Positions 31,437 through 44,379 of a stretch of 64,000 nt of DNA are shown here, in pieces. The stretch spans positions 434,001 to 498,000 of the forward strand of contig NIVC01000319.1 of NCBI GenBank assembly GCA_002269645.1, given 5' to 3'. Every line of letters starts with the position of its first letter. The first letter of the stretch is position 1. The DNA is from Macrostomum lignano. Its lineage: Eukaryota. The notes beneath the pieces are model-generated. The model was not told the DNA's origin, searched no databases, and worked only from the letters and a program-made list of their open reading frames with translations. The translations under genes and the position numbers were made by a program.

Positions 31437-34400
31437 TCACAGCAGCTCACAGGTCCGCGAGCTCTGAGCCGATGGCGCCACGCTGCTGCCGGACTCCTCC
31501 TTCGAGGGCGACAATTTCGACAGGCCGTTGACGTTCTCAACTTTGACTCCGGACTGCGCCCGGCCTTCCACCGGCTTGCGGGGGCCGCTTTTGAAGAGTC
31601 TGCGGCTTGAAAATTAGTGGCTCCGTCATCAGAATAAGCTTGGACAAATAGTTGCATTGATACAACATTGCATTGTTATGAATATTATTAGGCTCAGCTG
31701 CTCGGCACCAAGCCTCCCAGATACTCGGCTGTTAAGCCAGCCTCCCAGATCTTCAGTTGCTGGGCAGCCAGCCTCCCAGATTCTCAGCTGTGAAGCCAGC
31801 CTCCCAAATCCCCAGTTTCTGGGCAGCCAGCCTCCCAGATTCTCAGCTGTGAAGCCAGCCTTCCAAATCCCCAGTTTCTGGGCAGCCAGCCTCCAAGATC
31901 CTCAGTTGCTGAGCAGCCAGCCTCCCAGATCCCCAGTTGCTGGGGAGCCAGCCTCCCAGATCCCCAGTTGCTGGGCAGCCAGCCTCCCAGATCCCCAGTC
32001 GCTGGGCAGCCAGCCTCCCAGATCCCCAGTTTCTGGGCAGCCAGCCTCCCAGATCCTCAGTTGCTGGGCAGCCAGCCTCCCAGATACCCAGTTGCTGGGC
32101 AGCCAGCCTCCCAGATTCCCAGTTGCTGGGCAGCCAGCCTCCCAGATCCGCAGTTGCTCGGCAGCCCCATCCCATCCGCTCACCCTGGAGTTTCAGGCTC
32201 GCCAGCGATTTTGTTGACTCAGCCGCAGCCGACGGCGTCTCGCTGCTGCCCTCGTCTACCGCCGTCGCATGAGTCTCCTCGGCGGTCGCTTCGCATTTTT
32301 CCTGGCGCAACGCCTGGGTGACGCCGTCCACCTGGGACTTGGAGAGGCCGGGCTGCAGGCCCTGCAGGTAGTAGCAGCCCACCGCGCCGGACTTGGACTG
32401 CGGGGTTCGGGCAGCGGATAGGAGTGCATGGATACTGGTGCGAGCATGCCAACTCAACTCGGGGCTCACCTTCAACTCGATGCTCTCAGCAGGCTCCATG
32501 CTGTAGTAGGTGGCATCCAGGCCCTCCACAACTCGGTACGTGATGAGGATTTTGCCGGACTGCGGGAGGGGTGCGGTTATGTCCGTCTGTCCGTCTGTCT
32601 GTCTGTCTGTCTGTCTGTCTGTCTGTCTGTCTGTCTGTCTGTCTGTCTGTCTGTCTGTCTGTCTGTCTGTCTGTCTGTCTGTCTGTCTGTCTGTCTGTCT
32701 GTCTGTCTGTCTGTCTGTCTGTCTGTCTGTCTGTCTGTCTGTCTGTCTGTCTGTCTGTCTGTCTGTCTGTCTGTCTGTCTGTCTGTCTGTCTGTCTGTCT
32801 GTCTGTCTGTCTGTCTGTCTGTCTGTCTGTCTGTCTGTCTGTCTGTCTGTCTGTCTGTCTGTCTGTCTGTCTGTCTGTCTGTCTGTCTGTCTGTCTGTCT
32901 GTCTGTCTGTCTGTCTGTCTGTCTGTCTGTCTGTCTGTCTGTCTGTCTGTCTGTCTGTCTGTCTGTCTGTCTGTCTGTCCGTCTGTCTGTCTATCTGTCT
33001 ATCTATCTATCTATCTATCTATCTATCTATCTATCTATCTATCTATCTATCTATCTATCTATCTATCTATCTATCTATCTATCTATCTATCTATCTATCT
33101 ATCTATCTATCTATCTATCTATCTATCTATCTATCTATCTATCTATCTATCTATCTATCTATCTATCTATCTATCTATCTATCTATCTATCTATCTATCT
33201 ATCTATCTATCTATCTATCTATCTATCTATCTATCTATCTATCTATCTATCTATCTATCTATCTATCTATCTATCTATCTATCTATCTATCTATCTATCT
33301 ATCTATCTATCTATCTATCTATCTATCTATCTATCTATCTATCTATCTATCTATCTATCTATCTATCTATCTATCTATCTATCCACTCCAACTCACAGAG
33401 CTCGCAGCCAGCACTCTCTGAGCCAGATTCACCGAGTCGCCGAACAGGCAGAAGCGCGGCATCTTCAAGCCGACAACCCCGGCCACCACGGGACCCCGGT
33501 GGACACCTAAAAATAAAGCGGTCATGAGCTGCAGTGTCTACTCTTCAAGATTTTAAGTAGTGCCAGTATAGGTAGTCAACGGCTTTGCATGCAATTTGAG
33601 CAGCTGCATGAGGAACAGAATTTTCCATAACTTTCTGCAGCCTGAGTTCGGTTCAGCTTCAGTTTCCTGCAGCTTGGCAGAGACAGATTTCCTGGAATCA
33701 GCGCCTGCAGTGCTGCTCAGATGACAATATTTGAAATCCCACCGGCCCCCTGCCCACTGAATACAATCAAATCCGACAGAATTTAATTACTGAATCATGC
33801 ATCCTTGATTCTGATTGCAAAACCCGTGGATTTCAATCAAATTTAAAACGCCATTCCAAAAAAGTTTGACATGTGTACTTTTTTATAATTAGGCATGCCT
33901 TGGATTCCTGGCGTTTATTCATCCCATGGAGACGAATAGCTGTGCGTACTGTGTGTGCCCTCTACCCGATCCTCTATCCAGTCCCTCATCTTCCTCTACC
34001 CAGTCCCTCATCTTCCTCTATCCAGTCCCTCATCTTCCTCTATCCAGTCCCTCATCTTCCTCTACCCAGTCCCTCATCTTCCTCTATCCAGTCCCTCATC
34101 TTCCTCTATCCAGTCCCTCATCTTCCTCTACCCAGTCCCTCATCTTCCTCTATCCAGTCCCTCATCTTCCTCTATCCAGTCCCTCATCTTCCTCTACCCA
34201 GTCCCTCATCTTCCTCTACCCAGTCCCTCATCTTCCTCTATCCAGTCCTCATCTTCCTCTACCCAGTCCTCATCTTCCTCTATCCAGTCCCTCATCTTCC
34301 TCTATCCAGTCCCTCATCTTCCTCTACCCAGTCCCTCATCTTCCTCTATCCAGTCCCTCATCTTCCTCTATCCAGTCCCTCATCTTCCTCTACCCAGTCC

Positions 34401-41565: not shown

Positions 41566-44379
41566 TCACTTGTTGTCCCCGCTCTCCGCCGCCTCGGTGG
41601 GATATTTCTCCCGGAAGTAGGCCCGGCTGGCCTCCGGGTCGGGCGCCAGGCCGGCGTCCCCCGAGTTCCAGTCGGCCGGGCAGACCTCGCCGTGCTCGTC
41701 GGTGAACCGGAAGGCCGTCAGCTGGCGGTATAGCTCGCCGACGCTGCGGGACACCTGCGGACAGGCGATGAAGGGTGCCCGAGGGTCAGGGTGCACCGAC
41801 CCGCATCCGGGATACATTTCCCATTCTTGGTTCGGCAAGTCCCCATGCAGATAAAAATACGCCAATCAAGGCGAACCACGAACTCTCACAATCGCACGAG
41901 CTGTCTGCAATTTCCTTGGGTAGCCGATCAACCTTCAAGTAGCCCCGGCCAATTTAATAGATTAATCATTTAACAACAATGAATGACTGAGGCCACTGAT
42001 GAACCGTTCGGTTTGGCAAATTAATGCAAATTTAGCGAGTCTATAGAAACAGAGAACGCTCGGGTGCCCACGCAAGATGAAGCTTGAAGCGATGAGCCAT
42101 GCAATGCACTGTGGGAGGCCCTGCAATATCAGCAAATCCGAGACAACGGCAAGCCTAATCAAGCAGAGCAGGAAGAGTTACCTAGGCTACGGGGTTGTAG
42201 CCTAGTCGTTAGAGCATTGGACTCACGATTGAAGGGTCGGGGGTTCGATTCCCAATCCCACTGGAACAATTTGTGTTCTTGCATTTAACTCTGCATTGCT
42301 TCAGTTCACCCAGCGGTAGAATGGGTGCCGGCATAAGCTGGGGTAATTGAGGATGTGTGTGGCGACCCTCTAATCTGTGGACTGAACAGCCGTACGCAGC
42401 CTTCAGATGCGCCGCGCGCTAGCTGCGGCTGAGCTGTCGGTTGCACATCTGGCCATTAGGGCAGGCGTAATTATTGATAAAAATAATTATTCCTAAATAA
42501 ATGTACTCCTTCATCTACATTCAAGAGTTGGCAATAGTTCACAAAACATATTTTTTAATTCTGCCAAAGCATTTACCAGCAAGGAGTGCAAGTCGTAAAT
42601 AACATATTTTTTCGGCAAGCGCAAAAATATATGAATCATTTTTTATTCTGCGCAGAGACGAAGTCGGGGAGATGAAAAGCACTAACGGCTCAGGTGAGCC
42701 CCGAGTGCTGATCAACAGTAAACACCGGCTTTGCAATCGAATTTCTTTGACAAGCTGCAAGGGATTAGCAGGCGGCAGTCAGGAAATAATGCAGTGATCG
42801 CCGTCAGGCATTTTCCCGAATTCAAGAGAGCTGCAGCGGCCTGAAGCTGCAACTCAAAGGCCTCTGTTTGTTTTGCTGATACTGGACAGACTGCAAAACC
42901 TTCCGGACAAAAGCTGCCATATCCGATTGCAGAAAACTATACGGGTCAACAACTGACGGATAGGCGTTCCACTTGAGCTTGGAGCAATTTATACAGAAGG
43001 CTGGGTAAACACAGGCGTTTATGGCCTTTCAAATGCCAAAGCATTGCTTCAAGACTGCGTGCAACCTTGAAAACGGAAAATAAAAAGCCCCACAAAGTCT
43101 CCTTGCGAAAGAGTGTAATCATGCCAAGAAAGTGCTGCGTTGCAGGATGCAGCCCTAATTATGTCATCAAAGAAAGGTGCATTGTCTTATGGCTTCCCGA
43201 AAGAGGCCAAATGGCCCGGCCGATGCAAGTTACGTAAATAGCCCAAGCCGACTGTCTGACCGTTTGAAAGCAGCTTCTGCTCGCCCCGTTTCTATAAAAA
43301 GCTGTCGATTTTGTTTGTCGTAACGTTTGAATGAATAAACTTGTTAACGTGACAGCATGCAGCTTCAGTTTAACTTTATTGTCAGCCTGGATGCATCAGT
43401 GATGTCTTACATGAAAGTCCAGGCCTCGAGATAAAAAATTACACAAGACGTCATGCACTCTCGTAGCTCCTCACGCCCCAAAGCACCTTTGAACTGAATC
43501 TGGGTGACAATTGGCCATCCAGTTTCTTTCTCTTCTGGAGCGCTGATTGGCTGAATGGAAACTGCCCACTGTACATGTTCGCATAAGCACCGGTTTCCTT
43601 TCTACCCTCCGCTCCACCAACTCTGAGCGTAAACGACCGTTTACCGTATTTGGGACCCTGAGCTCTGTTCTTAATCTTACGTTTTTTTCAGTTTTGCAAG
43701 CGTCCCTGCTAATTCCCAGGGCCCCTTCCCTGCATGTCCGCCTCTGCTAAGCATGGAGAGTAGCTACAACCTTCGAGTTACTGGAGCCCAAGTTCAGTGG
43801 CGCTCTTGTGCAACCATAAAAGTCTCAAACTTTCGTCCGCAAAGTCGCTCCCAAGCCCCTCACCATGGCATCGTTGATGGTGAGCTGGCGCACCACCCCC
43901 TTGTCGTCAAGAATGACGTGGGCTCGGTGCAGCAGCTCCGCCTTGGCGTTCCACACACCGGCGAAGTGGCAGCTGAACCGGCCGGCGCCATCGCAGATGA
44001 CGGGGAACGGCAGTTCCTGCAGGCCGCCGCGGCTGGCCGGCGTGTCCATCCAGCGCTGCACCTGGTCGACGCTGGCGTCCACCACGCCGACAACGTAAGT
44101 CTTGTGCTGATCGTGCAGCTCCTTGACCATGTCCGCTGAGACGGCGTGAAACTCATCGAAAAGGTCGCTGCCAGAGTCGGACAGGCGGTCGACGGCCGGG
44201 CCGTGGGTCGGCAGGAACAGCAGCAGGAGGTAGCTGTGCGACAGGCGGTAGGTGCGAAGGCTCACCTCCTGGAGACTGCCGCCGGCAACCGCGACTGCGG
44301 TGGCGTCTTCCGGGGCGACTTGGCCAACCGAGACGGGCTGGCTGGAGCTGCCGCCGGCCGGTTTGCGATAATTCGACAT
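41566..44379 (-). CDS. Typical 2-Cys peroxiredoxin homologue lacking the peroxidatic Cys (pseudo-peroxidase), 234 aa; exons 44379-43864, 41754-41566
   Basis: VGQVAPE..YLLLLFLP..VVGV..WMDTPASRGGLQELPFPVICD..LHRAHVILDDKGVVRQLTINDAM|VSRSVGELYRQLTAFRFTDEHGEVCPADW..SRAYF aligns to the AhpC/Prx1 family. Phase-0 GT-AG intron, intact ORF with GC-rich third positions. Confidence 0.9.
42191..42490 (+). mobile_element. tRNA-derived SINE, copy 2 (in the peroxiredoxin intron)
   Basis: Colinear with 9383-9692; TAGCCTAGTCG A box, GGTTCGATTCC B box, AT-rich tail. Confidence 0.85.
43121..43220 (+). pseudogene. THAP-domain remnant (P-element-like transposase N-terminus)
   Basis: MPRKCCVAGCSPNY, then after a frameshift KGALSYGFPKEAKW, matching the THAP CxxxxC...FPK...W pattern. 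Confidence 0.5.

Follow-up and report, generated by a model that had tools for sequence, protein, structure and literature searches.

Does the close spacing of two genes in the genome of the flatworm Macrostomum lignano reflect a shared function, a shared transcript, or neither? The question arises in a window of 64,000 nucleotides (assembly GCA_002269645.1, contig NIVC01000319.1, forward-strand positions 434,001 to 498,000; coordinates below are those of the window), where a gene for a peroxiredoxin (Prx)-like protein lies directly upstream of a gene for a soluble guanylyl cyclase (sGC). An initial annotation, made from the letters of the DNA, placed both genes on the minus strand with 655 bp between the Prx stop codon and the cyclase ATG, and proposed that they could be co-expressed as an oxygen sensor and its redox adaptor. 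These coordinates are confirmed. The reading favored here, with a probability of about 0.65, is that the genes are distinct, each of them intact and kept by selection, and are neighbors by chance.

The locus and its copies

Gene order along the minus strand is RPL19e (53631-47493), the Prx-like gene (44409-41566) and the cyclase (40910 to ~31843), on which a Tectonic-like gene converges from the opposite side (26150 to ~29857). As had been remarked, the neighboring gaps are larger: that between RPL19e and the Prx-like gene measures 3.1 kb and holds a tandem repeat, and the 655 bp are the shortest gap here. Approximately 15% of M. lignano genes lie in predicted operons, with repeat-adjusted gaps of less than 1 kb (PMC8629364). 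Because short gaps between co-oriented genes are common in the genome, a gap of 655 bp is unremarkable and no more than chance would give.

The Prx-like gene of the window is Mlig020987.g3 (BOX15_Mlig020987g3), part of a cluster of three GenBank copies (g1, g2 and g3) and three UniProt entries; its spliced product is 99% identical to BOX15_Mlig020987g1. The g3 locus in GenBank matches window 54409-31566 at 100% DNA identity. The M. lignano genome holds three copies of the locus, diverged by ~2-4%, and the Prx-like gene adjoins the cyclase in all three. Identity to the two other copies is 97.1% and 98.3% in introns and a comparable 96.1% and 98.2% in the spacer between the genes, which has no overall excess of conservation; neighboring neutral divergence amounts to 2-5%.

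The peroxiredoxin-like gene

The features of the Prx-like gene are as follows.

43864-44379, minus strand: exon 1, with the ATG at 44379, 172 codons, the degenerate active site LPTHGPAVDRL and the Pfam domain AhpC-TSA
41755-43863, minus strand: intron of 2109 nt, GTGAGG...CCGCAG
41566-41754, minus strand: exon 2, with the resolving Cys in EVCPADW, the YF motif and the stop codon TGA at 41568-41566
41345-41350, minus strand: AATAAA, which probably directs polyadenylation of the Prx-like mRNA, the same in the three genomic copies and confirmed at the position given in the initial annotation

The two exons encode a protein of 234 amino acids; the GenBank coding sequence (CDS) of BOX15_Mlig020987g3 begins 30 nt farther upstream, at 44409, as a 5′-partial CDS. 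Pfam recognizes AhpC-TSA and 1-cysPrx_C in the protein (7.6e-10 and 2.4e-10), and its best solved relatives among PDB sequence matches are rat and human Prx1/2, at ~1e-28. An AlphaFold2 model from a 43-sequence alignment reaches a predicted local distance difference test score (pLDDT) of 82.9 and a predicted template modeling (TM) score (pTM) of 0.80; being built on a family alignment, the model leans toward the family fold. Its pLDDT falls below 50 only at the first three residues and at residues 61-70, the loop that would carry the peroxidatic Cys (Cp). Foldseek returns reduced human Prx2 (7kiz) as the top match, with a TM score of 0.89 on the target. The predicted fold is that of a typical 2-Cys Prx of the AhpC/Prx1 subfamily. 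A model from a 6-sequence alignment (pLDDT 40) was discarded.

The upstream gene had been described as a peroxiredoxin without its peroxidatic Cys, and alignment to Prx relatives bears this out. The catalytic motif PxxxTxxC has become PxxxPxxD, reading LPTHGPAVDRLS here versus YPLDFTFVCPTE in most of the nearest relatives. In the stretch P57-T-H-G-P61-A-V-D64, Asp aligns with Cp and Pro with the catalytic Thr, so that the PxxxT/SxxC pattern is absent. The protein keeps the active-site Arg152, the resolving Cys197 with Pro198 (the VCP of EVCPADW) and the YF motif; R152, C197 and P198 are invariant alignment columns among the Prx relatives. The GGLG of the family reads GGLQ. Since Cp is absent, the protein would be unable to reduce peroxide by the Prx mechanism: thioredoxin-dependent peroxidase activity is expected to be lacking, and the automatic UniProt name "thioredoxin-dependent peroxiredoxin" is doubtful.

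The protein has the fold of typical 2-Cys peroxiredoxins such as human PRDX1-4 and yeast Tsa1, with TM scores of 0.88-0.91 to PRDX2/3/4 and Tsa1/2. It also has their active-site Pro and Arg, their VCP with the resolving Cys and their YF motif, and identity over the C-terminal half is 40-55%. The differences are that the M. lignano protein has Asp for Cp, Pro for Thr and GGLQ for GGLG, together with an insertion of ~11 residues after helix α2 and with N- and C-terminal extensions. Replacement of Cp by Asp is used in the laboratory as a mimic of the hyperoxidized (sulfinylated), chaperone-like 2-Cys Prx and alters its set of partners (PMC7346168). The engineered Arabidopsis 2-CysPRX C54D carries the same residue change at the same position; unlike it, the M. 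lignano change is natural and is joined by the Thr-to-Pro replacement and a remodeled Cp loop (PMC7346168). The C-terminal half of the M. lignano protein, which carries the dimer interface and the resolving Cys, is well conserved. Because Cp-to-Asp mimics the hyperoxidized state and because this half is conserved, we infer a pseudoenzyme that would act by binding, through protein contacts. It might join canonical Prx subunits in mixed dimers or decamers, or serve as a permanently "pseudo-hyperoxidized", chaperone-like scaffold. In a distant eukaryote, the Tritrichomonas musculus "peroxiredoxin" KAK8838833.1 has IPSRKHSINASE as its aligned active-site stretch, without a peroxidatic Cys, and looks like an independent Cp-less peroxiredoxin.

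Below 1e-30, an exhaustive HMMER search of 1.84 billion representative proteins finds nothing beyond the cluster to which the protein belongs; the match that follows is 39% identical, at 1e-22, and no orthologue outside M. lignano was found among these representatives. Many relatives align only from about residue 95, the N-terminal half being very divergent. The nearest named relatives are ordinary eukaryotic peroxiredoxins of a chytrid, a spider and a hydrozoan. The gene therefore appears to be a long-branch, lineage-restricted offshoot of the Prx1-4 type.

A gene with two of its four catalytic residues gone and a highly divergent N-terminal half could be a decaying pseudogene, or an annotation artefact. 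The copies make this very improbable. The open reading frame (ORF) and the canonical intron are intact in all three, residues 11-232 are identical across them, and amino-acid differences are confined to positions 9-10 and 233. For ~500 non-synonymous sites, the neighbors' rate predicts ~24 changes and the synonymous rate of the gene itself ~6, yet there are none. The gene is also present in the transcript-based annotation, and the fold prediction is confident except at the Cp loop. Judged by this comparison, the Prx-like gene is intact and selectively maintained. Its synonymous divergence between copies (0.006-0.012) is 4-8 times below that of the cyclase (0.036-0.048) and of the flanking non-coding DNA, which may reflect chance, selection on codon usage (GC content at third codon positions, GC3, is 0.88 in the CDS) or gene conversion limited to the exons.

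Several observations concern the start and the intron of the Prx-like gene. Copy g1 has an insertion of ~40 nt at the start codon (10031-10076 of the copy sequence L001; window 44382-44377), which introduces a new ATG and adds one Ser (MSSNYRK, also found in the UniProt entry A0A1I8GK59); the GenBank g1 protein reads as though this insertion were skipped. Antisense within the intron, at 42191-42260 on the plus strand, lies a tRNA-like element that scores 33.7 bits with the Rfam tRNA model against a gathering score of 29 and receives no tRNA call from ARAGORN; it probably represents either the remains of a tRNA gene or the head of a short interspersed nuclear element derived from tRNA. A pair of CCAAT motifs (CAGCCAATCAGCG and GGCCAATTG) at 43560-43500 on the minus strand, also in the intron, resembles a pair found 5′ of the cyclase and may belong to a repeat or to a cryptic promoter.

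The guanylyl cyclase gene

The cyclase gene was assembled as an 11-exon model, in frame throughout and with GT-AG introns only.

40585-40910, minus strand: exon 1, H-NOX domain with the haem ligand His105; ATG at 40910
39700-40171, minus strand: exon 2, end of H-NOX with YxSxR and Tyr145, and start of HNOBA
39528-39402, 39311-39194 and 39125-38996, minus strand: exons 3-5, HNOBA/PAS-like
36778-36632 and 36552-36406, minus strand: exon 6, coiled coil, and exon 7, where the cyclase domain begins and the first metal Asp lies
34856-34700 and 33506-33397, minus strand: exons 8-9, cyclase core with ETTGD, CLFG and N..R
31843-32559, minus strand: exon 10 (32559-32470) and exon 11 (32397 onward), end of the cyclase domain, secure to ~32185

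The initial annotation had called the downstream gene an atypical, "O2-type" sGC, and this identification stands. Pfam finds HNOB (residues 2-163), HNOBA (208-429) and Guanylate_cyc (440-620), all complete; among named relatives, "soluble guanylate cyclase 88E(-like)" proteins of chelicerates match best, at 39-45% identity over the first 266 residues. By its sequence the gene is a Gyc-88E-type soluble guanylyl cyclase, a class assigned by comparison with 51 relatives and with human and Manduca β1. Aligned with β1 and the 51 relatives, the protein keeps the haem-binding set, with the proximal His105 and Y135/S137/R139 (YxSxR). At β1 position 145 it has Tyr, as do 49 of the 51 matches, and at position 149 Gln, as do 47; human and Manduca β1 have Ile at both. 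In O2-binding H-NOX domains a Tyr is reported at this position and is reported to favor O2 binding, which gives a lead rather than a test. The catalytic set is complete in alignment to α1/β1 (FSDVIGF, ETTGD, RFCLFG and VNLAQR, with Asp where β1 has Gly): two metal-binding Asp, Glu/Cys for GTP and the Asn/Arg pair are present, consistent with homodimer activity.

Drosophila Gyc-88E/Gyc-89D and Caenorhabditis elegans GCY-35/36 are O2-regulated atypical sGCs. The M. lignano protein has their domain order of H-NOX, HNOBA, coiled coil and class III cyclase; with the Gyc-88E clade it also shares the Tyr145/Gln149 signature of the H-NOX pocket and a full catalytic set as in the homodimer-active Gyc-88E. 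It differs in its flatworm source, in diverging after the catalytic Arg, where relatives have an ASRMES-like sequence, and in an uncertain C-terminal tail that runs into a 31-bp tandem repeat. Regulation of the cyclase by O2 is suggested by these residues and relatives, and the enzyme would most likely make cyclic GMP (cGMP) under O2 control in a few cells. Purifying selection on the cyclase is clear from the aligned copies, with a synonymous divergence (pS) of 0.048, a non-synonymous divergence (pN) of 0.005 and a ratio of 0.11; the ratio of non-synonymous to synonymous substitution rates (dN/dS) ranges over 0.11-0.21.

Where the cyclase ends is uncertain: the C-terminal tail and stop may be reached by read-through, at 31843, or by a further splice. 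In one alternative, a GT donor at 32183 joins a CAG acceptor near 31600 in a different frame, with a stop at 31337. The end at 31437 given in the initial annotation is not upheld, as the canonical sites examined offer no in-frame join from there to the last homologous exon. The 31-bp repeat overlaps the possible C-terminal coding region, and the ORF through it is equally long in copy L001. Exon 4 has tandem acceptors at 39317/39311 on the minus strand (CCAG|ACTCAG|), 6 nt apart and both in frame; two isoforms differing by Asp-Ser are possible. The introns consist mostly of long simple repeats, both micro- and minisatellites (37150-38995, 34868-36021, 32580-33380, 33970-34667 and 31735-32166), among them (ACAG)n over 1.85 kb, (AGAT)n over 1.15 kb, (TGTC)n over 0.8 kb and 32 repeats of a 22-bp unit. 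In copy L004 (14178-19820; window 40204/40194), intron 1 holds ~5.6 kb of extra DNA, a 22-bp minisatellite of ~250 copies; this insert is not a transposon and contains no ORF of at least 150 amino acids.

The spacer and transcription

Between the two coding sequences lie the following features.

40911-41565, minus strand: spacer of 655 bp, unique sequence without tandem repeat
41069-41103, minus strand: candidate 3′ splice acceptor or spliced-leader (SL) trans-splice acceptor, with a pyrimidine tract at 41103-41089 and CTGCAG at 41074-41069
41003-41034, minus strand: two forward CCAAT boxes (41034-41030 and 41007-41003), 93-124 nt upstream of the cyclase ATG

The initial annotation had seen in the CCAAT boxes a sign that the cyclase has its own promoter, and both boxes are confirmed. 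The proximal box lies inside a stretch that is free of substitutions in the three copies; the distal box lies just upstream, with a substitution beside it in one copy. Runs of 108 and 78 nt do not vary at all, though three closely related copies are not enough to infer constraint. On the upstream side, two of the Prx copies are annotated with 5′ ends 3 nt apart, neither of them after an AG. These ends look like transcription starts more than SL sites, and the Prx-like gene would then have to come first in any operon. This gene also has a CCAAT of its own ~50 nt upstream of the annotated 5′ end. The two genes are most likely transcribed separately, the Prx-like gene having its own 5′ end and poly(A) signal.

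The genome annotation points the same way. The Mlig_3_7 annotation is based on RNA sequencing, discards novel transcripts below 0.5 reads per kilobase per million (RPKM) and records transcriptional units of several genes (PMC5730564). In its GenBank CDS table, the form in which it was viewed, the Prx-like gene is annotated alone, and all three copies of the cyclase are without an overlapping gene or transcriptional unit (window 40910-31843; L001 13462-19922; L004 13474 onward). This suggests very different expression levels, and expression of the cyclase would be far weaker than that of the Prx-like gene. The cyclase appears in UniProt only within a fused model, A0A1I8GK59.

SL trans-splicing and operons, which the initial annotation had noted for some invertebrates, do occur in this organism (PMC8629364; PMC5730564): 30% of M. 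lignano genes receive a 35-nt spliced leader (PMC8629364). The two genes could accordingly share one precursor as an SL trans-spliced operon without shared function, in which the Prx-like gene has its own promoter and is not trans-spliced, polyadenylation follows the AATAAA at 41345 and the leader is added to the cyclase mRNA at the acceptor 41069/41068. We consider this unlikely. In its favor, 18% of operons begin with a gene that is not trans-spliced (PMC8629364) and 45% of conserved genes are trans-spliced. The likely mRNA ends of the two genes are ~250-400 bp apart. The modal operon spacing, by contrast, is ~100 bp, several times less than the Prx-cyclase spacer, and pairs of a non-trans-spliced and a trans-spliced gene have no separate short-distance mode (PMC8629364). 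Known M. lignano operons resemble the locus in co-orientation, a gap of less than 1 kb and a candidate YTNCAG before the second gene, and differ from it in that no annotated unit spans both genes here (PMC8629364; PMC5730564). The CCAAT boxes would, in an operon, fall within the 5′ untranslated region (UTR) of the cyclase, and chance alone would place ~1.3 YTNCAG motifs in 655 nt. The spliced-leader sequence is absent from the window, which thus holds no SL RNA gene. Were the operon real, it would not imply a shared function.

A third arrangement, a single gene for a Prx-H-NOX-cyclase fusion, would need a cis-spliced intron whose donor GT overlaps the stop codon of the Prx-like gene and whose acceptor AG comes 33 nt before the cyclase ATG. 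Donor (AA|GTGATG) and acceptor maintain the reading frame and occur in each of the three copies. The acceptor GAGCGAAG| is nevertheless purine-rich, lacks a pyrimidine tract and ends in AAG, whereas the 11 real acceptors of the two genes are CAG or TAG. The other copies are modeled as a stand-alone Prx of 234 amino acids, and the transcript-based annotation closes the Prx CDS at its stop codon. The cDNA junction predicted by A0A1I8GK59 would read GACAACAA|AGCAGCG. This model takes the coiled-coil exon of the cyclase in an incorrect frame and extends translation into 5′ UTR, errors that ab initio predictions make; with its atypical acceptor, it is rejected as an ab initio artefact. A fusion gene is highly implausible.

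Chance neighborhood of two separately transcribed genes remains our preferred reading, and a number of points weigh against it. The genes are co-oriented, and their unique 655-bp spacer falls under the distance limit for operons (same orientation, repeat-adjusted gap below 1 kb; PMC8629364). The pyrimidine tract and the CTGCAG at 41074-41069, which fits the acceptor motif YTNCAG (PMC8629364), are followed by an ATG-free leader: the last ATG before the acceptor is at 41082, and ~170 nt then run to the cyclase start codon without one, a run that has a probability of ~0.07 by chance. A UniProt model, the 940-amino-acid A0A1I8GK59, joins both genes, with the protein junction after ESGDNK. Separate transcription is read from annotation and sequence motifs only, and O2 binding by the cyclase from homology only. 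Finally, dN/dS of the Prx-like gene is not estimable from 7 substitutions in 705 nt, and gene conversion may be the cause of its invariance.

Proposed functional pairing

In the model that grew from the initial annotation, one set of sensory cells expresses both the O2-type cyclase and the Prx-like protein, and the latter acts on the cyclase as a redox adaptor without catalysis of its own. There is biology to which such a pair could be related: sGC activity is sensitive to thiols, and in C. elegans thioredoxin modulates sensory neurons that depend on guanylyl cyclases. The adjacency is kept in three copies, the core of the Prx-like protein is conserved and the Cys in VCP, of the redox-active type, is retained. 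The copies, however, are only 2-4% diverged, so their shared linkage is inherited and says nothing further. Gyc-88E-like genes have no Prx within 10 kb at five loci outside M. lignano, those of Ramazzottius (a tardigrade), Paralvinella (an annelid), Lottia (a limpet) and two other eukaryotes, in gene tables and in tblastn searches with five Prx queries; all five are distant from flatworms, which makes this a weak negative.

The evidence from protein architecture is similar. Ten of the longer proteins among the 150 best Prx relatives include no Prx-cyclase fusion; the partners joined to Prx there are retrotransposon pol, Mpv17 and thioredoxin, with neither cyclase nor H-NOX among them. The Prx-like gene has no orthologue elsewhere among the representative proteins searched, the annotation suggests very different expression levels for the two genes, and membership in one operon is, in nematodes and flatworms, generally no sign of shared function. 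A literature search returned nothing relevant on guanylate cyclase in Macrostomum or on peroxiredoxin together with sGC and oxygen sensing, and no link between Prx and atypical sGCs; on a distal Tyr in Gyc-88E it returned only a choanoflagellate preprint. With linkage among recent copies only, none near the related cyclases at the five loci and no fusion among the ten proteins, a co-expressed sensor and adaptor finds no support and is very improbable. A narrower version, in which a "pseudo-hyperoxidized" Prx shares its transcript with an O2-binding cyclase and modulates this enzyme in the sensory cells of flatworms, is a shade less credible again; if true, it would constitute a dedicated pseudoenzyme partner that couples peroxide or thiol state to O2-dependent cGMP signaling. 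The sensor-adaptor pair has adjacency as its sole footing, and the pairing is best read as an ordinary neighborhood.

Other features of the window

Elsewhere in the window are the following.

5009-6427, minus strand: ORF of 472 amino acids, amiloride-sensitive sodium channel (ASC/DEG-ENaC)
7545-8141, plus strand: exon of a G-protein α subunit
17144-19353 and 22390-24453: decayed remnants of reverse transcriptase and integrase
26150-29857, plus strand: the Tectonic-like gene (DUF1619)

Implications

The locus calls for corrections to the annotation of M. lignano: a complete Gyc-88E-type cyclase is missing from GenBank, the fused UniProt model is to be split, and the name "thioredoxin-dependent peroxiredoxin" is probably wrong. 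Should the pairing prove functional after all, it would provide a genetic handle on thiol or peroxide input to O2 sensing, in an animal in which transgenesis and RNA interference are available. For the Prx family, a natural Cp-to-Asp peroxiredoxin that appears to be under selection offers a possible means to test which roles its scaffold has beyond that of a peroxidase.

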